Assembly (NCBI RefSeq): GCF_004010195.1
Contig: NC_057746.1
Span: forward strand, 26,556,070 to 26,620,069
Length of the DNA stretch: 64,000 nt
Source: Chiloscyllium plagiosum
Lineage: Eukaryota
Direction: 5' to 3'
Shown here one piece after another: positions 2,721-43,389 of the stretch. Position 1 is the first letter of the stretch. Each line of letters starts with the position of its first letter. The position numbers and the translations under genes were made by a program. The notes under the pieces were generated by a model. The model saw nothing but the letters and a program-made list of their open reading frames with translations, was not told where the DNA came from and did no database searches.

Positions 2721-2930
2721 GGTTTCCTATGAATGTGTGTGTGCCAGTGCACATTGGCAATGGGATGTAAACACCAGCTTAGACCAATAGCCTTTTCCCA
2801 TGTTTTAAATTTGCTGTGAAATCAGGCAGACTGAAAATCAAGCTTCCAACCTGAGTCTGGGCCGGCTAAATCAGTTTTTTTCATTTCAGTTTCAGTAATC
2901 CTGAGTAAATGGTCTTTCATTGCTTTTCAG

Positions 2931-2972
2931 AGAAATACATGGAGTTTGACCTCAATGACCAGGGAGACATTG
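2931..2972 (+). CDS. AIF1: AIF1 (allograft inflammatory factor 1 / Iba1) internal coding exon (KYMEFDLNDQGDI)
   Basis: ttttcag acceptor, G|gtaagt donor, 42 nt. Translation matches the AIF1 EF-hand loop KYMEFDLNxxGDID. Upstream exons lie outside the window. Confidence 0.95.
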
Positions 2973-5009
2973 GTAAGTCTGACATTTCTCAGTTAACCCT
3001 GGGACACAGTGAAAGCATTTTGAACTCATTGCCTGTAGCTGACGTTCTGCTACTCGTCCATATTCCCAGAGAACAAACCTCAAGCTTAGAGAACTTTTCA
3101 TTTCAGAAAAAAAAAATTCACTTCTCGCTTTTCCCTGAGTCTCTCCAACTCCACTCGCAACCAGCCTGAAAGTTGACTTGGAAAATATTGGGATGTTGCC
3201 ACTGCCATCTCCCATTCCAAATCTGGACCTTTTCTTTCCAATTTGGAGTCTCCATTTGGCTCATCCTCTACTTTGGGAATGATGGAATGTGACAATACAC
3301 GAGGTGGCCATTCAGCCCCTCATGTCTGGAAGGACCATTGTGAAAGAGCCACTATCTATTTCCATTCCCTTCACCCTCACTTTCTCTGTCATCCTGCCAA
3401 TTATTCCTTTTTACCTATTTACCTGATTCCCTTTTGAAAGTTACATTTGGACCTGCTTCCACATCCCCCCATTAAGGCAATGCATTCCAGATTACAACAA
3501 CCCACAATGTCAGAGCAAAGTTCTCGTCGTTGCCCACCCTGAATTACTGGTTTAATTATCTTGTGTCCGTTGATGTTCTGTCAGTGGAAGGTTTCTTACT
3601 TTTCACTCGATCAAAATGCATCTCATCTCCAGTTCCAAAAGAGAAAGAGACCAATTGGCCCATCAAGAACATGCAATCTCAAAGGCCAAGTTGCTTGGTA
3701 CTCTTCTTACCCTTCTCCCTGTAACCCTGCACATTCTTCCTTCTGGGGTAGTAGTCTGTTTGCATCTCAAAAGCCTCGATGAAAACTTGCTCCGTCGCAC
3801 TCTCATCGAAGAACCTAAACACGTGCAGCAAGAAAACATTTATCCTCGTCTTGCCATCGCATTTGTTGCCTACAATTTTAAACTTCTGGCCTTTGGTTCT
3901 CGATCCCTCCACTAGTGGGAACTAGTTTTCTCCCTGCTGATTCTGTCCACACCCTTCATGATTTGTGAATCTCTATTCAATCTCATCTTAAGCAGCTCCT
4001 CGGGGACAGGGCTGACCCCCCACCAAGGTTGATTCTGTTTTGTTTCCTGATGAAGCTCTCGAATCTTTCCCTGAAAATTTGGAAGTCTGACACATTTTGC
4101 CAGGGCAAGGTCAGATGGGGAAAGGGTGGTTATGGTTCTGTTGCTGAAGGCCAACAGAGAGCTGGGTTTTTTTTGTGGTTGTGGTGGGATGGGTTCCATC
4201 GGTCTGGCAGCTTTTATGACCAATGGGTTACCCCGAGGCCAGAGTTTGGTCAAATTCCAAAGTCTTGAGCTTTGTCTCATGTGTCTGGCCTCATGGCTTT
4301 GGCCACACTGTGGCAGAGGCTGGCGAGCTTTAGTTATGAAGTGAGATTGGACAGACTGGCATTGTTTTCCTTGGAGCAGAGGAGGCTGAGGGGGATATGG
4401 TTGCGATGTATTAAAATTATTAGGGGTATAGATAGGGTAAACCATTAGATATAGGTGAGGGTGTAGGCCATTTGACCCCTGAGCCTGCTCCGCCATTCAA
4501 TAGGATCACGGCTGATCCGAAAGACAGGGGATAACTTTACCCCCTGATGGAGGGCATAGATCAATGGAAAGGGGCAGGTGGTTTACAGGGGATGTGAGGA
4601 TCCCAGAGGGTGGTGGGAATCTGGAACTCACTGCCTATAAGGGTAGTAGGGGCAGAAACCCTCATAACATGTAAGAAGTATTTAGATATGCACTTGCGAT
4701 TTCAAGGCTATGGACCAAATGTTGCAAATTTGGTTATGTGGTTGTTGTTGATGGATCAAAGGGTCTTTTTACATGCTTCACACCTCAATGGTATGATGGT
4801 CTAGGTGCCACAGACTGTGGGCAACCTGGCAGCTGAAGCAGAATCCCAATGTCTGGTCCATGTAGGCATCACCGGGAATAGTGACCACATGCAGTGATGA
4901 GGGCACTACCGAGGGGTGGCGGATATTGTGGGCAGATGAGAGATAAACTGTGTTGTTTCTACACCAAATCAAATCTTCGCTCTTCCCCCCTACCCACCCT
5001 CTTACTCAG

Positions 5010-5172
5010 ATATCATGGGACTGAAGAGAATGCTGGAGAAACTTGGCGCAGCCAAGACCCACCTGGAGCTGAAGAAAATGATCAAAGAGGTGGTGGGAGA
5101 CATGGGCGAGACCATCTCTTATTCAGCCTTCGTGAAGATGATGCTGGGAAAGCGGTCAGCCATCGCGAAAAT
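5010..5172 (+). CDS. AIF1: AIF1 internal coding exon ([54 protein letters not shown])
   Basis: ctcag acceptor, AT|gtaagt donor, 163 nt, in phase with neighbouring exons. DIDIM, MLEK and LELKK favour AIF1 over AIF1L. Confidence 0.96.
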
Positions 5173-5401
5173 GTAAGTCCTCCTTCAGACAGCAAGAGAG
5201 AGAGGGAAAAGGGGGAAAGGATGGGGTTTTATTTACATCAGAGCATGGCTCATGGGGGTGCTTGGGAGTGTGTGTGTGTGTTTTGTGTGTGCACATGTTT
5301 ATGTGTGTGTGTGTGAGAAAGAAAGAGACATGGTGTATGAATATGAAGCTGAGAATGTGTGTCAGTAAAAACTTGTCTTGTGCAGCAAAGGAAGACAAGC
5401 A

Positions 5402-5722
5402 GGCGGCACGGTGGCACAGTGGTTAGCACTGCTGCCTCACAGCGCCTGAGACCCGGGTTCAATTCCCGCCTCAGGCGACTGACTGTGTGGAGTTTGCACG
5501 TTCTCCCCGTGTCTGCGTGGGTTTCCTCCGGGTGCTCCGGTTTCCTCCCACAGTCCAAAAGATGTGCAGGGTCAGGTGAATTGGCCATGCTAAATTGCCC
5601 GTAGTGTTAGGTAAGGGGTAAATGTAGGGGTATGGGTGGGTTTCGCTTCGGCGGGTCGGTGTGGACTTGTTGGGCCGAAGGGCCTGTTTCCACACTGTAA
5701 TGTAATGTAATCTAATCTAATC
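5402..5722 (+). mobile_element. HE1-type V-SINE (tRNA-derived)
   Basis: A/B boxes, V-domain gtggagtttgcac..gggtttcctccgggtgctccggtttcctcccac, (TAATC)n tail. Confidence 0.92.
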
Positions 5723-5789
5723 AGAATCACATGACTTCCTTTATTACAACAACAATGACAACCCTCATCCATTTTCCAGGGGGAAATGG

Positions 5790-6116
5790 GGGAGGCGATG
5801 GCCTAGTGGTATTATCGCTGGACTGTTGAGCCAGGTCATGTTCTGGGGACCCAGGTCCAAATCCCACCATGGCAGATGGTGAACTTTGAATTCAACAAAA
5901 ATCTGGAATTAAGAGTTTAACGATGACGAGGAATCCACTGTTGGAAAAACCCATCTGGCTCACAAACGCTATCCTTACCTGTTCTGGTCTACATGTGACT
6001 CCAGACCCACAGCAATGTGGCTGACTCTTAACTGCCCTCTGTCTAATTAGGGATGGGCAATAAATGCTGGTCTAGCCAGCGACGCCCTCATCACATGAAC
6101 GAACAAAGAAAAAAAA
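5790..6116 (+). mobile_element. Second tRNA-derived SINE family (decayed copies ~47205-47390, 55620-55920, 57100-57450)
   Basis: tggcctagtgg A box; tail gatgggcaataaatgctgg shared with LINE 3' ends at ~22280 and, on the minus strand, ~110 and ~6250. Confidence 0.7.
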
Positions 6117-6929
6117 GTTCATTGAAAATCTTGGAGGTAGTTTAAATTGAACCTGTCTATTGAGAGTGCAGGTGAAGGAAACTGGGGATAGTGAGCGAAT
6201 GTCGTTGACAGGATTTTAAGTTTTATTCGTTCAAGACTTGTGAAAGTAGCTGTCAAGACCAGAATTTGTTACCCATGCCTAATTTCCCCGGGGAAGGTGT
6301 TTGTTGACCCACCACCTTGAATTCTCACAGTCTTTGGAGTATAGGGGCACCCATAACGCTTTTAGGAAAAGTCTTCCAGGATTTTGACCCAAAGACAGTG
6401 AAGCTGCGGTGATATATTTTGAAGCCAGGATGGTGTTTAACTTGGAGGGAAACTTCCGTGTAGTTGGGTTCTCATATATTTGCTGACCTTGTCCTTCTAG
6501 ATGGTCGAGATCACTAGTTTAAGAGGTGCTATGTAAGGAACCATGGTGAGTTACCTCAGTGCATGCTGTAGATGTACACAACCTTGGCCAGTGCACATCG
6601 ATAGTGAAGGGGAATGAATGTTGAAGGTGGTGGATGAGGTACTGATCTCACTGGGGGCTGATTTATCCTGGATGGTGTCCATCTTCTTGAGTGTTGTTGG
6701 AGCTCCACTATCCGAGCATGTGACAAGTGTCCAGCACATTCCTGACATGTGCCTTGTGTCAGTGAACAGAATTCAGGCAGAGAGGAGGTGAGACACTGGC
6801 TCCAGAATCCTCAGCCTCTCACCTGTTCCTGGATACACAGTATTTAAATAGCTGGTCAAGTTCAGTTCTTGATCAATGGTAACTTGCTGGATATTGATAG
6901 TGGGGAATTCAGCGATGGTAATACCATTG

Positions 6930-7088
6930 CCGGAGGAATCATCACAGAAGCACTTCACAGGAGGCTCCCAAGCACTAAGGATGTCACCTAGACAGGGGAC
7001 GAAACATCTGCAACACAAATTCCCAGCTCGGCGAACAGAACCACAACAACGAGCACCCGAGCTACAAATCTTCTCACAAACTTTGAAT
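6930..7088 (+). mobile_element. Penelope pLTR, third family, with decayed hammerhead
   Basis: gca-CT(A)AGGA-tgtc..gac-GAAAC-(A)TC-tgc. Confidence 0.55.
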
Positions 7089-8027
7089 ACCATTGAATGC
7101 CAACTTCACCACTCAGTTTACATCTCACCCTGACTATCTGCTAAAGTCAACAAAGAAAGTATAAAATACGTTTTAAATCACAAAGCCAATTTATTGTGCC
7201 CGTGACTAATCCAATTTTAAATGACATTTTCAGAAATAGCTTGTGAGCGGACACAGCATATTGCCTGGTGATCTTAAAACTCATTTGAAGATCACTTACA
7301 TCTGTGTCAGGTGAAACTTCAAGCCTATGGGTCAGCTACTCCAGGGTGCAGGCTATTTTCTCCCTGTGAGGATTTGGGCACCTTGCCAACTGGTGATATA
7401 GTTGAAATGTATGAAGGTGGATCCATCATTCATTCAAGGGTGAGGCACGAGTACAGGAAGCTTATAACAACTCTTATCGCAAAGGCTTCATTCTCACTTT
7501 CTAGCTTTCAGGTAGCCTTGGAATAAACTCTCAGAGTGCTTTGTTGCTCTCTACAGGACCAAAGTTTGCAATTCAAATACATTGTATCAAACAGTGCTGT
7601 ACCTGCCCTGACAGAACAGTGCGGAACAGCTTTACTCTGTATCTAACCCTGTGCTACACATGTCCTGTGTGAGTTTGATGGAGCAGTGCAGAGGGAGTTC
7701 TAACACTGTTCTATATCTATCCTGAAGGTATTTGATGAAACAGTGTACAGGAGCTGTACCTGCCCTGACAGAACAGTGCGGAACAGCTTTACTCTATATC
7801 CAACACTGTGCTGAACGTGCCCCGTGTGTGTTTGATAGGATAGTGCAAAGTGTGGTTTAATCTATATCTAGCTCTGTGCTATACCTACCTTGTATATGCT
7901 TGATTGGGAAGTAAAGAGAGAGCTTTACTTTGCATTTAATCTGCAATGCATCTGTCCTGGGAGTGTTTGATGGGGACAGTGTAGAGTGAGCCTTACTGTC
8001 TACCTGACTTCTTCTGTATCTGACTTC

Positions 8028-8483
8028 TTCTCCCCCTCCCACTCCACCAAGGATATGCAGGTCTTTGGACTCCTCCATCGCCAGACCACAACAACATGAC
8101 GGTTGGAGGAAGAGCGCCTCATCTTCCGCCTAGGAACCCTCCAACCACAAGGGATGAACTCGGATTTCACCAGTTTCCTCATTTCCCCTCCCCCACTTTG
8201 TCTCAGTCAAATCATCGAACTCAGCACCGCCTTCCTAACCTTAAATCTTCTTCCTGACCTCTCCGCCCCCACCCCAGTCTGACCTATCACCCTCACCTTG
8301 ACCTCTTTCCACCTATCGCATTTCCAACGCCCCTCCCCCAAGTCCCTCCTCCCTACCTTTTATCTTAGCCTGGTGGACACACTTTCCTCATTCCTGAAGA
8401 AGGGCTTATGCCTGAAACGTCGATTCTCCTGTTCCCTGGATGCTGCCTGACGTGCTACGGTGTTCCAGCAACACATTTTCAGT
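8028..8483 (+). mobile_element. Penelope-like element fragment in the last AIF1 intron
   Basis: near-identical to 53788-54363 (reverse strand). Confidence 0.88.
8390..8425 (+). ncRNA. Minimal hammerhead ribozyme motif, sense to AIF1
   Basis: CUGAAGA-A-GGGC-UUAU-GCCU-GAAA-C-GUC. Confidence 0.5.
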
Positions 8484-8661
8484 TCTTCTGTACCTGCCCT
8501 TGGAGTGTTTAACATGGGGTGTACAGAAGATAAAGTATTTTCTTCATCACCTTTCGTGATGTATGGGCAAAGTCAAGGAATGGTGTGTGTGTTTGTGTGT
8601 GTGTGTTACCTAAGCCCTAAGCTGAAATGACAACTAGCTCATGCCTTCTCTTTTTGCACAG

Positions 8662-8746
8662 AATCTTGTTGTATGAAGAGAAAGCAAAAGAACCTGAGAA
8701 ACCCACTGGACATCCAACAAAGAAAACCTTCAGCGACCTCCCATAA
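8662..8746 (+). CDS. AIF1: AIF1 last coding exon (ILLYEEKAKEPEKPTGHPTKKTFSDLP*)
   Basis: tttttgcacag acceptor, phase 2, ends in TAA. Matches the AIF1 C-terminus YEEKA..EKPTG.P.KK..S.LP. Confidence 0.95.
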
Positions 8747-24432: not shown

Positions 24433-24626
24433 NNNNNNNNNNNNNNNNNNNNNNNNNNNNNNNNNNNNNNNNNNNNNNNNNNNNNNNNNNNNNNNNNNNN
24501 NNNNNNNNNNNNNNNNNNNNNNNNNNNNNNNNNNNNNNNNNNNNNNNNNNNNNNNNNNNNNNNNNNNNNNNNNNNNNNNNNNNNNNNNNNNNNNNNNNNN
24601 NNNNNNNNNNNNNNNNNNNNNNNNNN
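24433..24626. other. Assembly gap (N) flanked by poly-G tracts
   Basis: run of N. Confidence 1.
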
Positions 24627-28960: not shown

Positions 28961-29021
28961 ATGACCAGGAATGTGCGATCTGTCCCTGCCTTGGTCCTAA
29001 TGTCTTTCTTCTTGACCACAG
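28961..29021 (+). CDS. NCR3/NKp30-like Ig receptor, exon 1 signal peptide (MTRNVRSVPALVLMSFFLTT)
   Basis: ATG, hydrophobic core, phase-1 donor G|gtaaga compatible with the V exon. Confidence 0.85.
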
Positions 29022-29488
29022 GTAAGATTTCAATGTTTCCCCATGCATTCCTGAGGAGAATTGGGGAGTTAGTGGGAGGAGGGGAATGGTGTTGGTGGGA
29101 AATGACGGGGCTGGGGGTGTTGTTGGATGATTTACGGAGTTCCAAACGCACCAATCCGTGTTCAGGGTCTCCGATCATCTCGGGAACTCTTGAAACCGAG
29201 ATTCCAATGGCACCAAAGCAAAAGTTGCTGATACAACTCAGTAGGTCTGGCAGCATCTGTGAAGAAACATCACAGTCGACGTTTCCTCAGGACTGCTTAT
29301 TTTTTAAAAGGGAAGAACATTGGGACAGACAAAGGAGTTGCTAACGATCTGGTTAGGAAGGTGAATACTGTTACTGGAGACGGTTAGTGGCCAACAATAG
29401 GTAGCGTCTAACGGCATGTGTATAGTGCAATGGGTTCACGTAGTGTGAAATGAATCCAAGGTAACGGTTGAAGTCATTGTACTGCATA

Positions 29489-29722
29489 TACACACACACA
29501 CACACACACACATAGATGGACATACACACAGACGGACACACAGGCGGACACACAGGCGGACACACACAGACAGACGCACACAGGCGGACACACACAGACA
29601 GACGCACACACGCGCACACACACTCACGCAGACCTTCTCTCATACGCTCACACTTAACACACTCTCACAGAGCTACACCCGTTTACACTCACACACACAC
29701 ACACAGCCACATGCACACATAC
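29489..29722. repeat. (CA)n-rich compound microsatellite
   Basis: direct reading; similar GT/CT tracts at 5267-5314, 22361-22432 and 30600-30670. Confidence 0.9.
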
Positions 29723-29744
29723 ACTTATAAGTTTGAGGGGTGCT

Positions 29745-30130
29745 ATGTGATCACAAGCCCGGTGTGTGGGGTAGGAGGCTAAGGCATGGAGGGAGTTCAG
29801 ATCTTAAAGTTATTGAACTCGATATTGAGTCCGGATGGCTGCAGGATTTCCAAATGGAAAATGAGGTGCTGCGCTTCCAGCTTGCGCTGCAGGAAGCCTG
29901 AGGCAGAGACGTTGGCCAGGGAACAGAGCGATGTGTTAAAGTGGCAGGCGACTGGAAGTTTAGGGCATTGTTTTTTGTGGGAAGAACTTAGGTTTTGCGC
30001 TGCGGTCATCCAGTCTTCGCTTCGTTGCCCCAGGGAAGAGGAGACAAGATTGTGAGCAACGAATGCAGTCAACTGGATTGAATGAAGTGCAGGTAAAGCA
30101 CTACTTCACCTGGAAGGTATGTTTGGGCCT

Positions 30131-30132
<2 letters not shown>
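29745..30132 (-). mobile_element. Degenerate Penelope-like fragment in receptor intron 1
   Basis: LPVACHFN..QRKLEAQHLIFHL.ILQPSGLNIEFNNF. Confidence 0.8.
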
Positions 30133-30179
<47 letters not shown>

Positions 30180-30250
30180 GAGGAGTGGGTGACCCAAGCA
30201 CAAAAACGAAACGACCGATGGCTGAAGCAAAGTTTTATTCCTAATAGCAG

Positions 30251-30568
30251 TTTACTCAAGTAAAGAAGAGGTACGGCAGTCGCCTCTTTCAGCCGAGTTT
30301 GTGGAAGGTCAGACCGCGACACTGAATTGCACCTTTGATCATCCTGGAGCCAAATCTTACAAATGGTTGAAAGATGATCTGAAAATACACCAAGCCATCA
30401 CAAAGTACCACGTGAGAGTAACTCAAAACAGTCAACTTTCCAACAATGAGCTGTTTATTTCTGTGCGGATCAGCGACCTCTCAGTATGCGATTCTGGGAC
30501 GTATTATTGCATCGTAGAGCAACTCGGCAGACAGTTTAAGGGAGCAGGAGCAAGTCTTATCGTGAGGC
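30251..30568 (+). CDS. NCR3/NKp30-like receptor, exon 2 germline-joined VJ-type Ig domain
   Basis: tagcag acceptor (phase 1), C|gtaaga donor. VRQSP..EGQTATLNC..W..ISDL..DSGTYYC..FKGAGASLIV gives V-set Cys/Trp/DxGxYxC plus a J-like GxG. Adjacent to AIF1, as NCR3 is in MHC class III. Confidence 0.92.
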
Positions 30569-31292
30569 GTAAGAGTTTTGTGCAACTTTGAGCGCTCGAG
30601 TGTGTTACTGTCTATTTGTGTGCGTCTATGTCTGGATGCATCTGTGTGTGTGTCTGTGTGTGTGTCACACACATATTCGTCCCCAAACAGACGCGCATAC
30701 ACTTCAGTGTCCTCGTATGGCAGCATCCCCAGGAGAACTGAATCTGTCTAACTCTGGGATCGTGTGTATTTGAGCGTGTATGCATGATATCGTACGTCTC
30801 TGTGTCAACGTCTATGTATATGTGATTTGGAGGAGACGGTGTTGGACTGGGGTGGATCACACAACACCAGGTTATAGTCCATCAGGTTTATTTGGAAGCG
30901 TTAGCTTTCGGAGCGCTGCTCCTTCATCAGGCGGTTGTCAACTACCTGATAAAGGAGCATCGATACAAAAGCTAGTGCTATCAAATAAACCCGTTGGACT
31001 ATAACCCGGTGTTGTGTGATTTTCAAATATGCATCTGTGCGTCTGGTGTGCCTCTGTGAGTTCGTGTATGTGACTTTGTGATTATGAGCACGCAGCCGGT
31101 GAGAAAAGGGCTGTGAGAGTGTTTGTCGTTGAGTGTGCGTCCGCGACTGTTACAGGAAATCGGCGTCAAGGCGCTAAGAAAGTCCAATGCTGAGATCCCC
31201 ATTGCTGAACGTGAAACGGCACGTTCTCGGAAAGAATTAACAGCCATTTGCTGAGGACGCTTGTCTAACTTTTGTTCCCATTACCATTGCAG

Positions 31293-31415
31293 GTGCTTCA
31301 CAAGAAAAACAATGCCCCCCCAATATCATACACATCGGGGCGGCTGCAGCAGTGCTGTCGGTGCTTTGCATTGCACTAATTGCAGTGTCGGTGAAACTCA
31401 GGCAACGAAATAAAG
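31293..31415 (+). CDS. NCR3-like receptor, exon 3 stalk + transmembrane (RASQEKQCPPNIIHIGAAAAVLSVLCIALIAVSVKLRQRNK)
   Basis: ttgcag acceptor, G|gtattt donor, phase 1-1. ~22-aa hydrophobic helix followed by basic stop-transfer residues. Confidence 0.9.
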
Positions 31416-32909
31416 GTATTTCATTTACTCCATTTATTATTGTTTGGACTACGCAGGAGCCCCGGTCCTACATAAACTTTAAATACGCGCCTGCACGGTC
31501 CTCGCTGTTTCGAGAGGAAATTTTCTGCACGCCCCACCTAGACCACCGCAAAAGCAGGTGATCACATCTAACAGGAGCGGTTCACGTAGATAGACCGTTA
31601 TCCCGTCTCCAAAGTCAACTAGGTATGGGCAATAAACGTTGCTTTGCCAGTAACACACACACACATGCCGAGGGGAGTTAAAAAAAATTCTTTATAATCA
31701 GAAGCATAGATAATTTCTGGTCAATCTGTTCAGAACATTTTTTTTACTGCTACAAATTGATTTAAGTTTAAAATCACATAACACCAGGTTATAGTCCAAC
31801 AGGTTTATTTGGAAGCACTGCCTCTCGCTAGGTCACAACCACCTGTTGAAGGAGCAGCGGTCCGAAAGCTAGTGCTTCCAAATAAACCTGCTAGACTATA
31901 ACCTGATGTTGTGTAACTTTTAACTTTGTTCACCCCAATCCAGCACCGTCATCTGCCAATCAAAAATTGATTTAACTGCTTTTTTATGCGCTCTTCAAGT
32001 TACTTTCGAGACAGGAAGATGCCATCATATTTTTGCTGAAACCATTTAATCGATTATTGCTGTGAACTCTTGTGCTTTGAGCCGGCGTGCCACATTTTCA
32101 CCTTTTGGTTTTGAAACTGGTAATGCTGAAACCAGACTGTCCCATGACCACGTAGAAATCCAGTCCGTAATTTCCAAGATCGATATACTGGTGGATTCAA
32201 TAACTCTTGTTGCAAAAGTTGCTCTTCTGCTGTTCATATATCCCAGCCTTTAGACCCTTCACTACAATTTCTTCAACTTTGAGCTCCTCGGATTGTGCAA
32301 TGAGCAATCTTCTAATGCTAAATGATCGCTCGGGCATAGCGAGTTTTGGAAAGCGCACGTGGGTCTTGAACCTGGCAGGGACATTATCACGGTGCAACGA
32401 GGACTCTTAAAAGTGGGCCATATAGCATATTTAGTCATCAGTGTAGGTGTAGAATATATACTAGCATACCACGCTACTCAAACGCACCAATGGAGCAAGT
32501 GGGACTCGAACGCCTGTCTTCTAGCTCAGAATTAGGGATACCACCATTGTGCCACCAGAGGCCTATGCGTACAGCGTATAAAGTACAGTCAACGCCAATC
32601 GTGTGTGAGAGATATGGTCTGATAGTGACAATTTTACGCAGTAGCTGCAAAAGTGAAATAAATTTGAATCACCGTCATGACGTTTAATGCTTATTGTTGT
32701 GAATTGGGAGGAACCATGGAATTGGGGCGAGCTATGTATGAGTAGGAGTGCAGTGACAATCTTGCCGCTATCACGCGTTCATGTCTATTGGGAGTTACAT
32801 TTCCAACTGGGAGTTATAGGTATACACGCCGAGCATTGAAACTGCCATTCAAATACTCATCCTATGTTCACATTGAACCTGTTTGTGATTCTCTTTTTTT
32901 TCTTTGCAG

Positions 32910-32928
32910 CCTGCATTGCTCTTCAGAG
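32910..32928 (+). CDS. NCR3-like receptor, 19-nt cytoplasmic micro-exon (ACIALQR)
   Basis: long pyrimidine tract + cag, AG|gtgagt donor, phases 1-2 fit both neighbours. Confidence 0.75.
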
Positions 32929-33096
32929 GTGAGTTCATATACTAGTTTAGTTTACACTAGTCCTCTGTTTTCTCTCTGATCTGTAAGTGAACCATCCCTC
33001 TCGGTCTCTATGGCCCTGATTCTGACTTGCAATGAGATGTAAAAATATTCCATTGACGAATACATTTTGTTAATCATGTTTTTTCATCTCCCACAG

Positions 33097-33131
33097 GCAG
33101 TTTGTTGCATACATCACCGAAAAGTCAACAG
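33097..33131 (+). CDS. NCR3-like receptor, cytoplasmic exon (QFVAYITEKST)
   Basis: catctcccacag acceptor, G|gtaact donor, phases 2-1. Confidence 0.75.
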
Positions 33132-33900
33132 GTAACTGATTTCTAACTTGCAGAAGGGAAACTTGTCCGATCACAAATTGACTTGAATGAAACCTCTCTT
33201 TGGCCCACTCTCGCTCACTATTTCAAAGCATTTTACCTTCTTAGATACGTAAGCGACCTGTCCTTGACTTTGTCAAGGCTAAATTCACTCAGACATGAAC
33301 CTTTCTCATGAACACGCTCTCAGCATTATAGGATTGGAATTTTTCTTTGTTTAGCTGTTACATCTGTTACAATAACTTCCAAGTTTTACTTAGGCACCAA
33401 CAATCTTATTGATCCACTTCCGTCATTTTTGTAAACATTGCACTCTTCCTCTTGTGAGATGTATCAAGTTTCTCCTTAGTTGTCCTTTTAACCCTGTCGA
33501 TATCAATATATTTACCTTCCTTCCCCTCTTCCCAACACCCCCACTGCATCAACCCTAACACACATCCGATATTTGCTCACATTGTTTACAAAGGAATTCC
33601 ATTCAGAATCTGAATGCTGACTGATCTTCTCTAGATATATGTTTTAAAATTCAGGCCAGATGCACTATTTCAGTCAATTGACTCAATAAGGAAAGGATAG
33701 GGACCTCACCGGTAGGAAGGTCATCGAATCACTGAGTTATACAGGCAGGAACAAACCCATGACCGAGCATGCGATGAAGAGATTTTTGTTGGAACTGTAG
33801 CTAATTGTATGATCTGGAATGTATAGTACGAAAGTGCTGTCAGAGCAGACTCAATTGTAATATCTCAGAAAGGGACTGAATATATAAGCTCAAACTAGGA

Positions 33901-34593
33901 TTTTTTTTTTTGGTAGGGAGTTTGTTAAGTGTGACCAAAGCAAGGAGGTAAATGAATTTGGGAACAGATGATATGACATGTCAGGCGTGAGGGGCAGTAT
34001 GGTCATTTTGTGTTCCCACATTGAGAAAAAAAAATTAGCAATGCTGAAAATGCACAGCAGCATCTGAAAGCGGCAGAATAATTATTCTTCTAAAATGAAG
34101 CCACAGAGGGGTTATGCTCGAAAACAAATTATCGGTGTGTTAGATGCAGTGGAGAAATACTGTTATCTTTGCATTTCCCCATTTTTAGTCATTGTAAATT
34201 TACATTTCATTAACTAAAATCTATGCAGAGAATATTAGATGCCCCACAAGTACACTATGTCCTAATTCTGCACCACCCCCCCCCCCAAACAGAAGTCAAT
34301 TTGCAGAACATTCAGGATCAATCTTAAGCAATCCCACATTTGAGTTCACATGTATGATAATGTATGCATATCGATATAGATTCTGTTTGCTATTTCTGTT
34401 TGCGACAACATTAGTTAGTATGTTATGATTAAGAAAATAATCCTTACAATGTGCTTCTTGACAGTAAATAGCATCACATTTTCAAAAGTAATCAACATTG
34501 TTCTAAATACATACTTTGCAAATATGAAATATGTAGCAATTAATAAATTTTATTTGAAGGCTGAAGAATTTAGCCATGCAAGTTATCAGATTA
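33901..34593 (+). repeat. Direct duplication, copy 1 (~0.69 kb)
   Basis: colinear with 37847-38524, roughly 90% identical by eye. Confidence 0.92.
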
Positions 34594-34634
34594 CTCACAT
34601 TATTGACAATGGAATTGTATCCAGAATCTGCTGA

Positions 34635-37600
34635 AATGGAGGACGGGAAAAATTTCTGCTCCATTTTTGAGGTATTTTAGGTGCTGGAGGTGATTTCTTC
34701 GAATTCCAGGAGCAGCAATTTCTGATTTATATGGTGTTGCATTGTTTTGGAACTTTGGGGGAAAAAAGTCAAAACAACAGCAGTTTTAAAAAGGAGAAGA
34801 GCAGACAAAGGAAGCACATGATAAGGACAGTGCAGGAGAGAGAGAGAGAGAGATCCTGCACAGTTACTGCCTTTGCTGTTTTGAATTCATGTATCGCTGG
34901 ACATCGGAGTGCATCTGGGAAAATTAACAAACAGTGAAATTCACAACTAATATTGGAGGAACCGGTTTGGGTGAAGTTCACAGCACAGAATCATATAAGT
35001 TAATTGTTGTTTTAAGTGTGTCCAATAGAAAGGCTGCAGTAGTGAGTACAGTGGGTTCTTTCTTGATTATATGTTTTTGGAGATAAGTCTCTTGATTAAA
35101 CTTAAAATATAAGCCATAACTATTAATTTAACCTGGTGCAGTGTTTTGCAGAGGAATAAGACGGTGTTATTTTCTGGGTCTGTAGATTGTGCAGGAGCAA
35201 AAATGGCCTTTGCAGTGATATGTACTTCTTGCCAAATGTGGGAGTTTAAAGAGAGTTTAAGGGTTACTGTGGATTATATCTGCCATAAATGCTGTTGGAA
35301 GCGAATCTTATCAGATTGAATGGATCGGTTGGAGAGACAGTTAGAAGGGATGATGAATTTGCAACAGCAACAGTATGTGATGGATTGCAGTTAAAGGAAG
35401 GGGAAAAGTCTCAGATACAGTCACATAGATGGGTTAACTCCAGGAAAGGTAAGAGAGGTAGGCAGCTAGTGCATGACTCTTTTGTGGACATACCCATTTC
35501 AAACAGGTATGCTATTTTGGAAAATGTAGGGGGTGATGGATTCTCAGGGGAATGTAGCACGAACAGCCAAGTTTCTGGTACTGAGACTGGATCTAATGCA
35601 ATGAGGGGTATGTCGGCTTCCAAGAGATCAATTGTGTTATGGGATTCTGTAGTCCGAGGTACAGACAGACGATTCTGTGGCCAGCAGAGAAATAGCAGAA
35701 TGGTGTGTTTTTTTCCCTGGTGCCAGGATCAAGGATGTCTCAGAGAGGGTGAAGAATGTTCTCACAGGGGAGAGGGGCTAGCAGGAGGTCATTGTTCACA
35801 TTGGAACCAACGACATAGTAAGGGAAAAGGTTGAGACTCTGAAGGGAAATTACAGAGAGTTAGGCAGATATTTAAAAAGGAGGTCCTCAAGTGTAGTAAT
35901 ATCTGGATTACACCTAGTGCTACGAGCTAGTAAGGGCAGGAATAGGAGGACAGGGCAGATGAATGCATGGCTGAGGAGCTGGTGTATAGGAGAAGGATTC
36001 ACATTTTTGGATCATTGGAATCTCTTTTGGGGTAGAAGTGACCTGTACAAGAAGGATGGATTGCATCTAAATTGGAAGGGGACTAATATACTGGCTGGGA
36101 GATTTGCTAGAGTTCCTCGGGAGGATTTAAACTAGTAAGGTGGGGGAAATGAGTTGGGACCCAGGGAGATAGTGAGGAAAGAGATCAATCTGAGACTGGT
36201 ACGGTTGAGAACAGAAGTGAGTCAAACAGTCAGGGCAAGCTGGGACAAGGTAGGACTAATAAATTAAACTGCATTTATTTCAATGCAAGGGGCCTAACAG
36301 GGAAGGCAGATGATCTCAGGGCATGGTTAGGAACATGGGATTGGGATATCATAGCAATTACAGAAACATGGCTCAGGAATGGGGAGGACTGGCAGCTTAA
36401 TGTTCTGTGATACAAATGCTACAGGAAAGATAGAAAGGGAGGCAAGAGAGGAGGGAGAGTGACATTTTTGATAAGGGATAGCATTACAGCTATGCTGAGG
36501 GAGGATATTCCCGGAAATACATCCAGGGAAGTTATTTGGGTGGAACTGAGAAATAAGGAAGGGATGATCACCTTATTGGTATTGTATTATAGACCTCCTA
36601 ATAGTCAGAGAGAAATTGAGAAACAAACTTGTAAGGAGATCTCAGCTATCTGTAAGAATAATAGGGTTTGTCATAGTAGGGGATTTTATCTTTTCAAACA
36701 TCGACTGGGACTGCCATAGCGTTAAAGGTTTAGATGGATAGGAATTTCTTAAGTGTGCACAAGGCAGTTTTCTGAATCAGTATGTGGATGCACCTACCAG
36801 AGAAGGTGCAAACCTTGACCTACTCCCTTGACCTACTCTTGGGAAATAAGGCAGGGCAGGTGACTGAGGTGTCAATGGGAGAGCACTTTGAGACCATAAT
36901 TCTATTCGTTTTAAAATAGTGATGGAAAAGGATAGACCAGATCTAAAAGTTGAAGTTCTAAATTGGAGAAAGGCCAATTTTGACGGTATTAGGCAAGAAC
37001 TTTCGAAAGCTGATTGGAGGCTGTTGTTCGTAGGTAAAGGGATGGCTGGAAAATGGGAAGCCTTCAAAAATGAGATAACAAGAATCCGGAGAAAGTATAT
37101 TCCTGTCAGGGTGAAAGGGAAGGCTGGTAGGTATAGGGAATGCTGGATGACTAAAGAAATTGAGGGTTTGGTTAAGAAAAAGAAGCAAGCATATGTCAGG
37201 TATAGACAGGATATATCGAGAGAATCCTAAGAAGAGTATAAAGGAAGTAGGGGTATACTTAAGAGGGAAATCAGGAGGGTAAAAAGGGGTCATGAGATAG
37301 CTTTGGCAAGTAGAATTAAGGAGAATTCAAAAGGTTTTTACAAATATATTAAGGACAAAAGNNNNNNNNNNNNNNNNNNNNNNNNNNNNNNNNNNNNNNN
37401 NNNNNNNNNNNNNNNNNACAAACCAGGGAAGTATAGACCGGTGAGCCTGACCTCGGTGGTGGGCAAGTTGTTGGAGGGAATCCTGAGGGACAGGATGTAC
37501 ATGTATTTGGAAAGGCAAGGACTGATTAGGGATAGTTAACATGGCTTTGTGCATGGGGAATCATGTCTCACAAACTTGATTGAGTTTTTTGAAGAAGTAA

Positions 37601-37850
37601 CAAAGAGGGTTGATGAGGGCAGAAGAGTAGATGTGATCTATATGGACTTCAGTAAGGTGTTCGGCAAGGTTCCCCATGGGAGACTGATTAGCAAGGTTAG
37701 ATCTCATGGAACACAGGGGGAACTAGCCATTTGGATACAGAACTGACTCAAAGGTAGAAGACAGAGGGTGGTGGTGGAGGGTTGTTTTTCAGACTGGAGG
37801 CCTGTGACCAGTGGAGTGCCACAAGGATTTGTGCTGGGTCCTCTACTTTT
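34635..37850 (+). mobile_element. CR1-clade LINE, 5'-intact (5'UTR, ORF1 Zn-finger/SGNH esterase, ORF2 endonuclease + part of RT), 3'-truncated and inactivated
   Basis: ORF1 MAFAVICTSCQMW..ICHKC and DSVVRGTDRRFC; ORF2 CIYFNARG, YYRPPN, YRPVSLTSVVGK, DVIYMDFSK. Stops, frameshifts and an N gap at 37362-37417. Confidence 0.92.
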
Positions 37851-38524
37851 TTTTTCTTTTGGTAGGGAGGATGTTAAGTGCTATCAAACCAAGGAAGTAA
37901 ATGAATTTGGGAACAGATGACATGATATATCAGACTTGAGGGGAAGTATGGCTATTTTGTGTTCCCACATTGCTAAAAAAAATTAACAATGCTGAAAATG
38001 CACAGCAACATCTGAAAGCGGCAGAATAATTATTCTTTTAAAATGGAGCCACAGAGGGGTGGTGCTAGAAAAAAGTATCATTGTGTTAGTTGCAGTGGAG
38101 AAATACTGTTATCTTTGCATTTCCCCAGTTTTAGTCATTGTAAATTTACATTTGATTAACCGAAAACTATGCAGAGAAAATTAGATGCCTCACAGGTACA
38201 CTATGTTCTAATGTTATCCACACCCCAAAATAAAAGTCAATTTGCAGAACATTCAAGATCAATCTTAAGCAATCCCACATTTGAGTTCACATGTATGATA
38301 ATGTATACAAATCGATATAGATTCTGTTTGCTATTTCTGTTTGCGACAATGTCAGTTCGTAGGTTATGATTACATTGTGCTACTTGACAGTAAATAGCAT
38401 CACATTTTCAAAAGACCAGTAATGAACATTGTTCTAAGTACATACTTTGCAAATATGAAAGATGCAGTAATTAATGAATTTTATTTGAAGGCTGAAGAAT
38501 TTAGCCATACAAGTTACCAGATTA
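37847..38524 (+). repeat. Direct duplication, copy 2 (~0.68 kb)
   Basis: colinear with 33901-34593; joins the CR1 at a T-tract. Confidence 0.92.
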
Positions 38525-38616
38525 GGTTGGGTAAAGATATGGATGGGCTGTTACACTTGTGACTTTCTGCATTTCATATGTATTTTTGCAAACCCATTGT
38601 TATTTCTTTCCAATAG

Positions 38617-38651
38617 AGTCTGCCCCATCAAATAAGAAAGGGAAGCACGCT
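38617..38651 (+). CDS. NCR3-like receptor, cytoplasmic exon (ESAPSNKKGKHA)
   Basis: tttctttccaatag acceptor, GCT|gtaagt donor, phases 1-0. Confidence 0.7.
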
Positions 38652-38689
38652 GTAAGTAGGATCCTATTGGAACATTCTATCATTAAAAT

Positions 38690-41000
38690 GTTATGAGTGC
38701 ATTACAACAGAAGTTGGCCATTCAGCCTGAATCTGTCCTGCTATTCCATATAATCATGGCCAATCAAACACTTCAATGCCTTTTACCCACCCCACCCCCT
38801 GAACCCTGCAAAACAACCGGTAATGAGAAACCTATGAACCTCTACCATAACCATCCACAATGACTGAGCTTTCATAGCTCCCCTGTCATAGTGAATACCA
38901 AAGGTTCACAGCTCTCTGAGTCAGAAACAAATCTCATCATTTTGGACCTCATTTACACTCTTCTTTTTTATTCACGATATCCTCTTATTCTAGATTCTCT
39001 AACCATAGGAAATATCTTTCCTGCATCTATATTGACTATCTGTTTGAGTGTCATCTATCTATCAGACTTGGCTATCAATCCAGATTTCATGAAATCACTT
39101 CTCATTATTTAAACTCTAGAGAATACAGGCCAGTTTGCTCAATCTGTCCTCACGCAACAGTCCCACAACCCCAGGAACAAGCCTTGTGAAACTTTGTTGC
39201 ACTCCCTCTACAGCAATAATACCTTTCTGACTTGAAGAGACTAAAACTGCAGACAATACTCCAGGTGAAGTCTAACCAAGCTCCCATAGAATTGAAGCAA
39301 GATTTCACTACTCCTGTACTCAAACCTTTTTGCCATGAGGGAGACATTCTTAATAGATTGCTGCGCCAATGTGCTTGCCTTCAGTGATTTATCCCAAGTA
39401 CACCTATGATCTCTTTGTGCACTTATACTTTCTAAGCTCTTTTTCTTTTAAGAACATTGGTTCCTCCTATCAAAGTGCTAACTTTGCCATGTTTTCGCCT
39501 CTTCACCAAGCCTGCAAATGCTTTACATCTACTTCACAACACACAGTTACACTTAGTGTTGTATATTTGCAAATTTGGAAATATTCCATTTGGTCTCAAC
39601 TCAATATAATTGATAAATATTGTGAACATCTAGGGCCCAATTGTTGCGATACACTTCTGCCAATGTGTGAATTACCTATGTATTCCTAATCTCTGATATC
39701 TATCTGATAACACATTATTAAGGCTGTGCAGGACAAATCAAAAATCTTCTGAAATTCAAATGACTATCAAAAGGCTTCTGAAAATCTAAGCAGATCTTCT
39801 TCATTGGCTGCCTTTTATCATTTTTAAAAATAATATTTCAAACATCTCGAACAATTTCATCAAATGTGATTTTCCTACTTGCATTTCATGCTATACCGGG
39901 TCAGATCATTATTATCTATATATGACATTCTTTCTAATTGATTCAAGCTCTTTCTCTAATATTGATATGAGGTTAACAGGCCTTAGTTCCTTGCTTTCTC
40001 TCTGACTCCTTCTAAAGCGGGCACACTTGATACTTCAGGAATCTTCCAAACTGCAGGAAGTTTTGCCAAATCTATATAATTTTGGAAGATAATCATCAAT
40101 GCACTGGATATCTTTAAAACTACGACCACTGACACTCTGGGATGCACAATATCAGGTTTTGGAGATTCATCAGCTTCCAGGCCCATTAATTTCTCCAGTA
40201 CAATCTTCTTACTAATGCTAATTTCTTTTAGCCCTTCATTCTCCATAGCCATTTGGACCTCTAGTTCGAGGAGATTTCTTTAATGTTCTTCAGTGAAAGC
40301 AGACACAAGTAATCATCACAAAGCTTCTTTGTCATTTCCCTATTTACTATCTTAAGTTCTCCTGACTGTCTGTAAGGATCCAGTATCTATAGAAACTATT
40401 TCACTTTTTTTTTTGTAGTTGTTAGATTGCATTCATATTTTATTTTCCCTTTCCATGTCAGTTTCTTGGACCTCTAAAAAGCTTCCAATCCTCAGATTTA
40501 TTATTATTTCTGACAACGTTACAGGCTTTTGTTTTTAATCTTATACAATCCAGAAGTTCCTTTGTTAATCATGTTTGATGGATCCTTTTTGCATTTTTCC
40601 ATCTTGAACTAATAATTGTTGTAACTCGTGCTAATTCTTTAAACACTATCCTTTGCTATGTATAGTTATACCTTTGCATATAATTACTCAATTTGCTTCA
40701 GACCTTTTTTTTAGATTAGATTAGATTCCCTACAGGGTGGAAACAGGGCCTTCGGCCCAACAAGTCCACACTGACTCTCCAAAGAGTAACCCACCTAGTC
40801 CCATTTCTCTCTGACTAATGCATCTATCACTATGGGCAATTTAGCATGACCAATTCACATGGCCTGCACATCTTTTGTGCTCCATGTCTTAATAACTTTC
40901 TTTAAACAAATTTAGCACCCTTGTTTTATATTGAAATATCTTACTTTCAAATGTCATGTAAAATGCTATCATATTGTCGTCACTCATCCCTAAAGTATTT
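38690..41000 (-). mobile_element. Old degenerate CR1-clade LINE
   Basis: LKEISISKKIVLEKLMGL..SPKPD..HPRV and decayed RT/3' motifs. Confidence 0.7.
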
Positions 41001-41154
41001 TTAGGACAAGATTATTAATTGTTCACTTGCGACCATATGAGACAGTGTCTAAAATCCTGTTTCCTTTGATTAACATCTTTCAAGCCTCGTGAAACAATTT
41101 CTCTAAATTTACTTTATCAAAATATTTCATGAGTTTGGATAGTTTGATTATAGA

Positions 41155-41730
41155 ATCATAGCGTCATAGAGATGTACAGCATGGAAACAGAGCCTCTAGT
41201 TCTGGACTCCCCAGCTCCAGGGAAAATACTTTGTCTATTTATCCTATCCATGCCCCTCATAATTTTGTAAACCTCTATAAGGTCACCCCTCAGCCTCCGA
41301 CACTCCAGGGAAAACAGCCTCAGCCTGTTCAGCCTCTCCTTATAGCTCACATCCTCCAACCCTGACAACATCCTTGTAAATCTTGTCTGAACCCTTTCAA
41401 GTTTCACAACATCTTTCGGATAGGAAGGAGACCAGAATTGCACCAGAGACCAATATTCCAACAGTGGCCTAACCAATGTCCTGTACAGCACAACATGACT
41501 TCCCAGCTCCTGTTCTCAATACTCTGACCAATAAAAGAAAGCATACCAAACGCCTTCTTCACTATTCTACCTCCTTATGACTCCACTTTCAAGGAGCTAT
41601 GAACCTGGACTCCAAGGTCTCTTTGTTCAGCAACACTCCCTAGGATCTTACCATTCAGTGTATTAGTCCTGCTAAGATTTACTTTCCCAAAATGCAACGC
41701 CTCGCATTTATCTGAGTTAAACTCCATCTG
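41155..41730 (-). mobile_element. CR1-clade LINE 3' fragment
   Basis: LYRTLVRPLLEY..RLRGDLIEVYKIM. Confidence 0.88.
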
Positions 41731-42473
41731 CTTGTTCTTTCAAATGTTCTACTTTAAGGAAATAAAATGGCTATCCTACCTATTTGAAATCCTGATGCCA
41801 TTTCCTCATATATCCTTTCCAAAGACTGAACAGCTTTCTTTCCAGCTAGAATCACTACCATGCAAAAGGACGCCATTCGGCCAATACCAGCCTTCCAAAG
41901 AACATCCCACCCAGATCTACCACCCTATCCGATCCCCATAACCCTGTATTCTCCATGACTAATGCACCTAATCTACCCATCCCTGGACACTCTAGACAAT
42001 TGAGCATATCTTTGGACAGTGGGAGGAAACCGGAGCATCCATAGGAAACCCATGGGAAGAATGTGTAATCTCCACACAGACAGTCACCTGAGGCCAAAAT
42101 CGAGCCTGAATCCCTGGTGCCATGAGTCAGCAATGCTAAACACTGAGCCACCGTGCCAAGTAAAACAACATCCCAGTGAGCAACCTAAAGGAAATGGCAC
42201 CACAGGATTTCAAGTCTTCAAATTTTTATTTCAACAAGCTAAACGAAACATTGACTTTTTTTTTGTAGTTAACTGATCCTTTAAATTACAGAGCTGAATT
42301 TCCCCTTTTACTTTTTAATACAACCAAAAATCCCACACATGGCTGTATTTTATCTTGTGTCTTAAATAGACATTCAATACTTCTGAAATCAGTCCAACAG
42401 CATTTTTTGCTCCTAAAAATGTGTTTACATTCGTTTTCATTGCCATCCTGGAAAATTTACTCCTAGAACTTGT

Positions 42474-42775
42474 GGGCTGCACGGTGGCACAGTGGTTAGC
42501 ACTGCTGCCTCACAGCGCCAGAGATCCGGGTTCAACCTCCCTGTGTGGAGGTTGCACATTCTCCCCGTGTCTGCGTGGGTTTCCTCCAGGTGCTCCGGTT
42601 TCCTCCCACACTCCAAAAATGTGCGGGTTAGGTGAATTGGCCACGCTAAATTGCCGGTAGTGTTAGGTGCAGGGGTAAATGTAGGGGAATGGGTCTGGGT
42701 GGGTGCGCTTCGGCGGGTCGGTGTGGACTTGTTGGGCTGAAGGGCCTGTTTCCACACTGTAAGTAATCTAATCTA
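42474..42775 (+). mobile_element. HE1-type V-SINE
   Basis: same head, V-domain and tail. Confidence 0.9.
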
Positions 42776-43257
42776 AAAAAAACCTGTCTTTCAATATGGG
42801 GGGTTCCCTGAAAATGCTCCCTCCAGCTCAAGCTGGGTGTATCCTCCAGCCTCGTTTAGACCTTCACAAATTTGATATTTTAAAAATATCTGATCTGAGG
42901 CATTCATTCATATTTTTGTCTCCTAGACATTGGAGATGCAGTCTCTATCCTTCTACGCCATATCTTTCCAGATAGGCCCCTCTGTGAAGTTTAATATCAT
43001 GTTAAGAGAAAAATCTGTTGAGTGAAACTACAGTGGCTACTCCTGGCTACTCCTCCCTCTTGTCGAAGTAAATTGGGGAGAATGGTGAAAAAGGCAGGAA
43101 AGTGGTTTGAAAATTGTGAGTTCAGCCACAATCTCATTCCTGGGATGTGGGCTTCACTGTTATGGCTAGCGTTTTCTCGCTCATCTGTAGTTGTCCTTCA
43201 GCTGAGTGGCTTGGGAACAACCGATCTCACCATTCTCTGTGACCATTGTTTTCAAAG

Positions 43258-43389
43258 CACCGAGAGGGAAAAACTTCGAGCTCCTGTCAAGAGGAGAAGA
43301 GAAAGAAGAAAAGAAAACCCAAAGAGCACCATAGGAAGGAGAATGCGGACTACGTCCATGTTGGGCCAAGCCATGGCAGACAGACCTAA
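43258..43389 (+). CDS. NCR3-like receptor, putative last coding exon (HREGKTSSSCQEEKRKKKRKPKEHHRKENADYVHVGPSHGRQT*)
   Basis: ttgttttcaaag acceptor, phase 0, open to TAA, terminal Tyr motif. The total spliced CDS is 723 nt (240 aa + stop). Confidence 0.62.
   Translation, partial: HREGKTSSSCQEEKRKKKRKPKEHHRKENADYVHVGPSHGRQT

Follow-up and report, generated by a model that had tools for sequence, protein, structure and literature searches.

The stretch analysed here, 64,000 nucleotides of contig NC_057746.1 of Chiloscyllium plagiosum (the window, in which all positions are counted from the first letter), contains the locus LOC122541175, a gene of seven exons on the + strand (28961-43389) that encodes a membrane receptor of the immunoglobulin superfamily (IgSF), and upstream of it the gene of AIF1 (Table 1). 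We consider it likely that LOC122541175 is an intact and expressed gene, the orthologue of the nurse-shark gene that has been deposited as NCR3 (NKp30), lying downstream of AIF1, and that its 241-residue product acts via its own cytoplasmic tail. All exons have canonical AG/GT borders and polypyrimidine tracts, the exon phases are 1,1,1,2,1,0, and the coding sequence (CDS) starts with the ATG at 28961, contains no in-frame stop and ends with the TAA at 43387-43389, altogether 726 nt or 241 aa. An initial annotation of this DNA, made from its letters alone, had proposed an intact gene of seven phase-compatible exons for a type-I membrane protein of 240 residues; the GT-AG borders and the identity to RefSeq isoform X1 confirm the exons, and the type-I topology holds as well, with a length of 241 rather than 240. 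The encoded protein consists of a leader, a V domain of the germline-joined VJ type, a stalk with a Cys, an uncharged transmembrane (TM) segment and a tail of 80 residues.

Table 1. Features of the LOC122541175 locus and the upstream AIF1 gene (positions in the window; matching residues refer to RefSeq XP_043533733.1, tblastn positions to the query with the C. punctatum orthologue)
Feature	Position	Strand	Length (nt)	Content	Matching residues	tblastn
AIF1 gene	2909..8743	+		At least three exons, in open frames 2909-3166, 4940-5173 and 8621-8743		
Exon 1	28961..29021	+	61	ATG and leader, 20 codons and 1 base; donor GT at 29022	20/20	
Exon 2	30248..30568	+	321	End of leader and entire V-set domain, including the J-like FKGAGASLIV strand	106/106	
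Exon 3	31293..31415	+	123	Cys stalk (QEKQCPPN), TM segment IIHIGAAAAVLSVLCIALIAVSV, stop-transfer KLRQRNK	40/40	
Exon 4	32910..32928	+	19	Micro-exon (ACIALQ), same in all orthologues compared	5/5	
Exon 5	33097..33131	+	35	Micro-exon (RQFVAYITEKST)	11/11	33095-33130
Intron 5	33132..38616	+		Decayed insert resembling a long interspersed nuclear element (LINE), about 34.7-37.85 kb, enclosing N gap 37362-37417		
Exon 6	38617..38651	+	35	Micro-exon (ESAPSNKKGKHA)	11/11	38616-38651
Exon 7, coding	43258..43389	+	132	Including TAA; Ser-rich, polybasic KRKKKRKPK, NADYVHVG	43/43	43258-43386

The gene model agrees with the RefSeq protein XP_043533733.1 ("uncharacterized protein LOC122541175 isoform X1", 241 aa), which is colinear with it and identical at all 236 whole-codon residues when compared without gaps, exon by exon and with the exons unjoined (protein positions 1-20, 22-127, 129-168, 170-174, 176-186, 188-198 and 199-241); the five split codons, read by hand, give A, R, A, R and E, the same as in the RefSeq protein. 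The orthologue of C. punctatum has the same residue at 218 of these 236 positions, and as a tblastn query it recovers six of the model's seven exons at their coordinates, exon 4 with its five codons being too short for tblastn. An acceptor of exon 2 at 30293, which leads to a product of 226 aa, was tried and rejected, as the V exons of the orthologues begin 15 residues earlier; the missing stretch of 15 residues lies inside the open frame 30226-30588, and the true acceptor is at 30246-47. The acceptor is a tandem one (AG then CAG, 30246-30250), and this accounts for RefSeq isoform X2, which has 240 aa and one Ala fewer than isoform X1. About 70 nt 5' of the exon 2 acceptor, intron 1 contains a run of about 46 G (30133-30178), which could be real or an artefact of the assembly or of homopolymer reading; the placement of reads passed over 30120-30188 as repetitive.

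The gene is transcribed, with splicing of exons 1 to 5. A search of read runs with the query 30293-31415, 35% of which is exonic, gave three runs that were classed as RNA by a guess of the tool (runs X1, X2 and X3, with 0.29, 0.21 and 0.14 of the sampled query words) and four probable DNA runs with 0.60-0.84. Contigs or reads of the three runs and of the single-cell RNA run X10 were placed on 28400-33300, which covers exons 1-5, while the use of exons 6 and 7 rests on the RefSeq and orthologue proteins. A contig of 364 nt from run X1 crosses the joint of exons 2 and 3 exactly and with 0 mismatches, its letters 1-248 corresponding to 30321-30568 and its letters 249-364 to 31293-31408. In run X3, letters 62-151 of a 151-nt contig lie on 30246-30335 and the first 61 letters are placed elsewhere; the sole depth of this run further upstream, 1.04 in the bin 28892-29055, equals 61 nt at the contig depth of 2.8, and the off-exon letters together with this depth point to a splice of exon 1 to 30248, the AG being common to both sides. 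The depths of run X3 at the end of exon 3 (1.76), at exon 4 (0.57) and at exon 5 (1.1), with zero depth in the unique intron bins between them, fit a single contig of depth around 5 that contributes 58, 19 and 35 nt, which suggests the joints of exons 3, 4 and 5. With regard to the six introns, the exon 2/3 joint is thus exact, and the joints 1-2 and 3-4-5 fit by depth. Run X2 has depth on exon 5 (0.65) without depth on exon 4. The RNA status of runs X1-X3 gains support from the spliced contig and from the zero depth in unique intron bins. The single-cell run, of which about 2% was read, has coverage only on repeats that resemble short interspersed nuclear elements (SINEs), and says nothing either way. 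Two such SINE-like copies in mutually opposite orientation, at 30855-30940 in intron 2 and at 31764-31920 in intron 3, draw contigs to a depth of about 10^4 and in all four runs give rise to many false joints.

Intron 5 contains an assembly gap, located 4,230 nt past the donor of exon 5 and 1,200 nt ahead of exon 6. As in the orthologue and RefSeq proteins the peptide of exon 5 is followed by that of exon 6 with just one split codon between them and no residue unaccounted for, the CDS does not depend on this gap. Directly after the gap, two open frames match positions 5-33 and 47-101 of Pfam RVT_1 colinearly, with weak scores of 14.4 and 12.8 bits that fall under the curated Pfam cut-off. The LINE-like insert has on either side one copy of a direct duplication (33901-34593 and 37850-38524, about 650 nt in four blocks), and because the copies are 86-93% identical, the duplication looks old rather than like an assembly error. 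An ARAGORN scan of 28000-44500 gave no tRNA.

The exons of AIF1 were revealed by a looser motif scan, patterns for EF-hand loops having given no match in the window; their readings include ...AIAKM and ILLYEEKAKEPEKPTGHPTKKTFSDLP followed by a stop. In the PDB, the middle exon matches AIF1 (1.8e-18) and Iba2 (1.4e-18) alike, and the last exon matches AIF1 only (2G2B 8.3e-7, 1WY9 4.1e-5), not Iba2/AIF1L. The receptor gene had initially been placed next to AIF1, and AIF1 indeed lies upstream of it on the same strand; immediate adjacency has to be given up, as 20 kb separate the end of AIF1 at 8743 from the receptor. Only repeats and a second N gap were seen between them. This gap (24433-24626, 194 N) is flanked by G- and Pro-rich open reading frames (ORFs) of low complexity, and nothing gene-like was found around it. 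Other genes belonging to the major histocompatibility complex (MHC) were not identified in the 64 kb of the window. Mammalian NCR3 and AIF1 lie side by side in the inflammatory region of MHC class III, where a passage of PMC1654159 gives the order LTB-NCR3-AIF1-BAT2.

Exon 2 matches the Pfam V-set domain (1.3e-9), and the AlphaFold2 (AF2) model of the V domain has a predicted local distance difference test score (pLDDT) of 92.4. In the PDB, the alignments of this exon to TCR-alpha chains extend through the J segments, and as the J-like strand shares the exon with the V part, the domain can be read as germline-joined VJ. A scan of 1.84 billion representative proteins returned multi-Ig giants by their summed score, and in addition four single-V proteins of sharks and rays with 209-241 aa. 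Searches that took first one of these natural proteins and afterwards the family alignment as query gave orthologues in Ginglymostoma, Rhincodon, Stegostoma, Chiloscyllium, Hemiscyllium, Carcharodon, Cetorhinus, Scyliorhinus (two), Mustelus, Heptranchias and Heterodontus, and also in Pristis, Mobula (two), Hypanus, Hemitrygon and Leucoraja, with E-values of 1e-44 to 1e-120 against the family profile. The only named one among them is QTT61902.1 / A0A8A9WR54 of the nurse shark, "natural cytotoxicity triggering receptor 3", and the others are uncharacterized, SIRP-like or CD8-beta-like in RefSeq. The window protein and QTT61902.1 are colinear throughout, and in an ungapped comparison by exon they share 63 of 106 residues in the V exon, 29 of 40 in stalk and TM, 5 of 5 in exon 4 and 10 of 11 in exon 5. 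A tree of V domains was calculated with 61 rows (17 of the family, 14 frog, 12 SIRP, 7 shark multi-V and 11 other sequences), proteins above 560 aa and species duplicates being left out. The elasmobranch family forms one clade in this tree (99/98), in which the window protein pairs with that of C. punctatum (100/99) and the two join nurse, whale and zebra shark within the Orectolobiformes (95/93), and as the topology tracks the species tree, with the rays apart from the sharks, the pattern is that of a single-copy orthologue. No second V exon or paralogous exon copy was found in the window by a YxC scan, tblastn or blastn-short. This includes 60180-64000, where tblastn with family proteins gave no match at E<0.5 and blastn-short no copy of the 19-nt exon. 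Judged by these sequence comparisons, the locus and the gene deposited for the nurse shark as NCR3 are one-to-one orthologues. MT914154-914161 are listed as nurse-shark NCR3 genes in a part of PMC12227049.

We take QTT61902.1 to be one NCR3 gene of Kinlein et al. 2021 (Immunogenetics 73:333), a link that is our assumption, and that work reportedly classed the nurse-shark gene as NCR3 and claimed its linkage to the MHC. Instead of being related to NKp30, the gene might belong to a separate elasmobranch lineage of VJ-type IgSF receptors (SIRP-, CD8- or CD28-like) that happens to lie near AIF1, with the nurse-shark name as a label of convenience. In this case, the searches with the V domain would be easily understood: NKp30 was outside the best 60 of 740 PDB matches in phmmer with the V exon, where TCR-alpha and SIRP came first, and outside the best 60 of 6065 with the family profile, where Ig light chains, VNAR and TCR-alpha led, and in Foldseek NKp30 (3NOI) had rank 40 (E 2.4e-7, TM score 0.69, 24% identity), with CD79b, VNARs of sharks and TCR V-alpha ahead of it. 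The node of the V tree at which frog NCR3-like, SIRP and shark multi-V sequences are joined to the family has 83/61 and is open, in a tree that was built without mammalian NKp30, and seven exons instead of the four of mammals, the lack of a TM Arg, the long tail and the RefSeq names of the orthologues fit a separate lineage as well. Against a separate lineage, it can be said that short V domains seldom resolve at such depth. A PDB search with a frog NCR3-like protein did not have NKp30 within its best 60 either, nor was any mammalian NKp30 returned by the profile search with the family alignment or by the search with a frog two-V protein. Furthermore, the gene lies near AIF1 as expected from the class III order in mammals, its product has the architecture of a type-I protein with one VJ domain, and among single-V proteins from outside the elasmobranchs the hidden Markov model (HMM) of the family scores a frog NCR3-like protein best, with 52.8 bits versus at most 43.7 bits for proteins named SIRP. 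A separate lineage is for these reasons regarded as unlikely, if worth keeping in mind. The initial identification as NKp30-like is thus sound with respect to the orthology to nurse-shark NCR3, and finds no such backing in the V-domain sequence and fold searches.

The tail of 80 residues is made of the end of exon 3 and four further exons, and the earlier description of about 80 residues from four small exons (19, 35, 35 and 132 nt) was accurate. Its parts differ greatly in conservation. Calculated as mean pairwise identity over 16 orthologues (past residue 188 without Leucoraja and Heterodontus X2, the models of which deviate), the identities are 0.33 for the leader, 0.48 for the V domain, 0.39 for the stalk, 0.60 for the TM segment, 0.79 for the exon 4+5 block, 0.42 for exon 6, 0.66 for the polybasic stretch and 0.33 for the last 17 residues. 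The best-conserved elements of the tail are accordingly the juxtamembrane block KACIALQRQFVAYITEKS, encoded by the 19-nt exon and the adjoining 35-nt exon, and the KKKRK cluster; KAC..LQRQFV is found in 15 of 16 orthologues and KKKRK in 14 of 16. Neither element had been pointed out in the initial annotation. The tail has no match to a Pfam family, and the ESM Atlas gave no usable feature match, with structural neighbours only below a TM score of 0.5. A motif census of the same 16 orthologues gave no immunoreceptor tyrosine-based inhibitory motif (ITIM), which is also absent from the tail exons of the window, and no corresponding activation motif (ITAM). Motifs resembling the switch motif (ITSM) occur at the exon 5/6 border of three orthologues, all of rays (TEYMKI, TEYLKI or TEYMRV); YxxM is present in two, also rays, and YxxPhi in 12. 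In sharks, the C-terminal motif is kept as Y-V/I-H. The ray orthologues have a Tyr motif at the exon 5/6 border (STEYMKI, STEYLKM, STEYMKM or STEYMRV) and most of them lack the C-terminal Tyr, and in sharks it is the reverse; each of the two lineages retains one Tyr of the YxxPhi/M type at a different place in the tail.

The initial annotation had the protein end in ADYVHV and considered it possibly inhibitory on account of this motif. The protein does not end there, as eight residues (GPSHGRQT) follow, and the inhibitory function finds no support in the motif census. According to this idea the protein would be a classical inhibitory receptor, in which phosphorylated ADYVHV acts as an ITIM, recruits SHP-1 or SHP-2 and thereby damps activation. 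A TM segment without charge and a Tyr in a long tail that has V at both +1 and +3 in the window, in C. punctatum and in both catsharks would be in line with it. However, ADYVHV departs from the canonical ITIM, [S/I/V/L]xYxx[I/V/L], by its Ala at position -2, where the orthologues have Ala, Asp, Asn, Gly, Glu or Pro and in no case S/I/V/L. The residue at +3 can be V, F, I, C, D or A (C in the nurse shark, D in Mustelus, A in Cetorhinus X2), Mobula, Hypanus and Hemitrygon have no Tyr at this place, and no part of the tail is less conserved than the one with the motif. An inhibitory receptor of the ITIM type is thus the less likely variant, and we regard it as quite improbable.

The tail can be altered by splicing. 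As none of the micro-exons (19, 35 and 35 nt) has a length divisible by three, skipping of exon 4 or exon 6 shifts the frame of exon 7, and in the window both other frames of exon 7 are open. RefSeq isoform X3 of C. plagiosum (211 aa) is without the exon 6 peptide, reads exon 7 in another frame and ends early, so that its tail is short and acidic and has neither KKKRK nor Tyr. Exon 6 is also skipped in Pristis X2 and Heterodontus X2, with tails that resemble the frame of this isoform, and in the Cetorhinus RefSeq isoforms X1, X3 and X4 the exon 4 peptide is absent and exons 5-7 are read in the third frame; the skipped isoforms of these four species are all RefSeq predictions. One of the non-CDS frames of exon 7 belongs to the ORF 43022-43477 on the + strand, which continues for about 73 codons past the exon 7 acceptor and for 29 past the normal stop and is the frame used by the Cetorhinus isoforms. 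The remaining frame ends after 25 codons and is the one that isoform X3 of C. plagiosum enters after the skip of exon 6. These alternative frames may be open by chance, as the sequence is purine-rich. In human NCR3, splice variation of exon 4 gives three tails with differing functions, as described in section 12 of PMC5371597. It is tempting to see in the shark tail a splice-programmable module, an ancient counterpart of human NKp30a/b/c, which would place a basic tail with a Tyr, a short acidic tail or a long alternative tail on one receptor, and together with the near-invariant KACIALQRQFVAYITEKS block this might mean that an adaptor-independent mode is ancestral for NKp30 and was replaced in mammals by the mode with TM Arg and ITAM adaptor; this is a speculative proposal, to which we give little credence at present.

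The TM core IIHIGAAAAVLSVLCIALIAVSV contains no Lys, Arg, Asp or Glu, as had been noted initially for Lys and Arg. All 16 orthologues possess an uncharged hydrophobic stretch that spans at least 21 residues; the lack of charge in the core is a built-in property, as the search pattern excludes K/R/D/E. An Arg abuts this core only in Heptranchias (1 of 16). Near the outer face of the TM segment, a His (IIHIG) is found in the window and in the orectolobiform, catshark and Heterodontus orthologues, and in Carcharodon, Mustelus, Heptranchias and all rays this position is Y, L or F. Human NKp30, too, has its Arg close to the outer face of the membrane. It could therefore be asked whether the shark protein is an adaptor-coupled activating receptor, in which the outer-face His or a non-classical contact pairs with an ITAM chain, and besides the His also the Arg directly before the core of Heptranchias would fit such a pairing. 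Yet the His is not kept across the family, Lys or Arg in the core is absent from 16 of 16 orthologues, and the conserved tail of 80 residues would be left unexplained, so that adaptor coupling appears very unlikely. A chance joining of ORF pieces into seven exons, or a pseudogene, could have been suspected because three exons have only 19-35 nt and may be found by chance; this is for practical purposes already refuted by the spliced contig, the exact colinear identity to the RefSeq protein, the orthologues in at least 20 elasmobranch species and the lack of an in-frame stop, and the micro-exon peptides are the best-conserved portion of the protein.

The TM Arg of mammalian NKp30 pairs with TCR-zeta/FcRgamma according to a passage of PMC5371597. 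As the shark TM segment has no such basic residue for coupling to CD3zeta/FcRgamma, the shark receptor is most likely adaptor-independent and works through its own tail, a mechanism of which we infer every signalling step. That the receptor signals by itself had been suggested already in the initial annotation, and in view of a TM core without Lys or Arg and a four-exon tail of 80 residues that is conserved across elasmobranchs, the suggestion is reasonable. In this mechanism, the Cys of the juxtamembrane block KACIALQRQFVAYITEKS may be palmitoylated, and the block may be a docking site for a conserved cytosolic partner. The KKKRK cluster would hold the tail on acidic lipids of the inner leaflet, and the Tyr of the YxxPhi type (YVHV) could dock SH2 proteins if phosphorylated, or bind AP-2 for endocytosis. 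For comparison, the YVKM motif of CTLA-4 binds AP-2 for endocytosis. In addition, the stalk Cys could form a disulphide-linked dimer.

Several observations weigh against this picture of an expressed NKp30 orthologue that signals through its tail. The RNA status of runs X1-X3 is a guess of the tool, backed by the spliced contig and by unique intron bins of zero depth, and the joints 1-2 and 3-4-5 were derived from depth, with a read placement that stops at exon 5. Direct comparisons of the V domain by phmmer, family profile, Foldseek and tree do not single out NKp30. The C-terminal Tyr is not universal: its +3 residue varies, and in four of the five ray models with a full-length tail the protein ends in QQGNIQ, with an Asn in place of the Tyr. 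The juxtamembrane Tyr is probably no phosphorylation site, as it is Phe in Heptranchias, and the outer-face His and the Arg of Heptranchias leave some room for pairing with an adaptor.

NKp30 is to our knowledge the only natural killer (NK) cell receptor that can be traced from shark to human, and the shark gene suggests that the activating mode of mammalian NKp30 with its ITAM adaptor is derived. With the Cys, the LQRQFV block, KKKRK and YxxPhi, and with the splice variants, the locus offers tail elements by which the function of the ancestral receptor can be tested. The practical gain is small, as the gene is already annotated, if unnamed, and its nurse-shark orthologue is deposited and, we believe, published; the value lies in giving a name to an uncharacterized RefSeq locus and in correcting its reading as an ITIM receptor.

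Among known systems, SIRP and other germline VJ receptors of the IgSF (CD79b, CD8, NITR) are like the shark protein in that they belong to the best sequence and fold matches of its V domain. SIRP differs from it by extra C1 domains and by canonical ITIMs or a charged TM segment, and forms its own clade in the V tree (99/98), apart from the elasmobranch family. CD28 and CTLA-4 have in common with the shark receptor the single V domain, the G strand of which has a GxG bulge, the stalk Cys, the independence (in the shark probable) of an adaptor and a single Tyr of the YxxPhi/YxxM type, which is YVHV in the window and YMKM or YLKM in Hypanus and Mobula birostris. The Tyr motifs of CD28 and CTLA-4 are themselves of the YxxPhi/YxxM type, and their genes have four exons, whereas the shark gene has seven, four of them for the tail, and a different chromosomal context; the MYPPPY-type loop of CD28/CTLA-4 is presumably absent from the shark receptor. 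CD28-family chains were not among the listed PDB matches of phmmer, family profile or Foldseek. The architecture had been placed between NKp30 and CD28/CTLA-4, and of this the stalk Cys and the Tyr motif remain, giving the comparison some support, and a relationship of the V-domain sequences does not, so that the likeness would be one of analogy only.

Like mammalian NKp30, the shark receptor is a type-I protein with a single V domain of the VJ type, its gene is found beside AIF1, and splicing alters the tail. It is unlike mammalian NKp30 in its seven exons, the TM segment without charge, the stalk Cys and the conserved tail of 80 residues, where mammalian NKp30 has the TM Arg and a short tail, and the V domains of shark and 3NOI are 24% identical. 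In a part of PMC1654159, NCR3 of human and wallaby is given with four exons, and the human protein with 201 aa. The nearest known relatives are the RefSeq entry LOC122541175 isoform X1 itself, which has neither name nor function there and is identical at all residues compared, and nurse-shark QTT61902.1 (238 aa). The latter differs by a V domain that is only 59% identical, by a Cys instead of Val after YVH and by a length that is 3 residues shorter, but its tail is much closer, and it agrees with the window protein in the colinearity of seven exons, in the plan of leader, V domain, stalk Cys and uncharged TM segment, and further in the identical KACIALQRQFVAYITEKS block and in sharing the polybasic cluster and the NADYVH motif.

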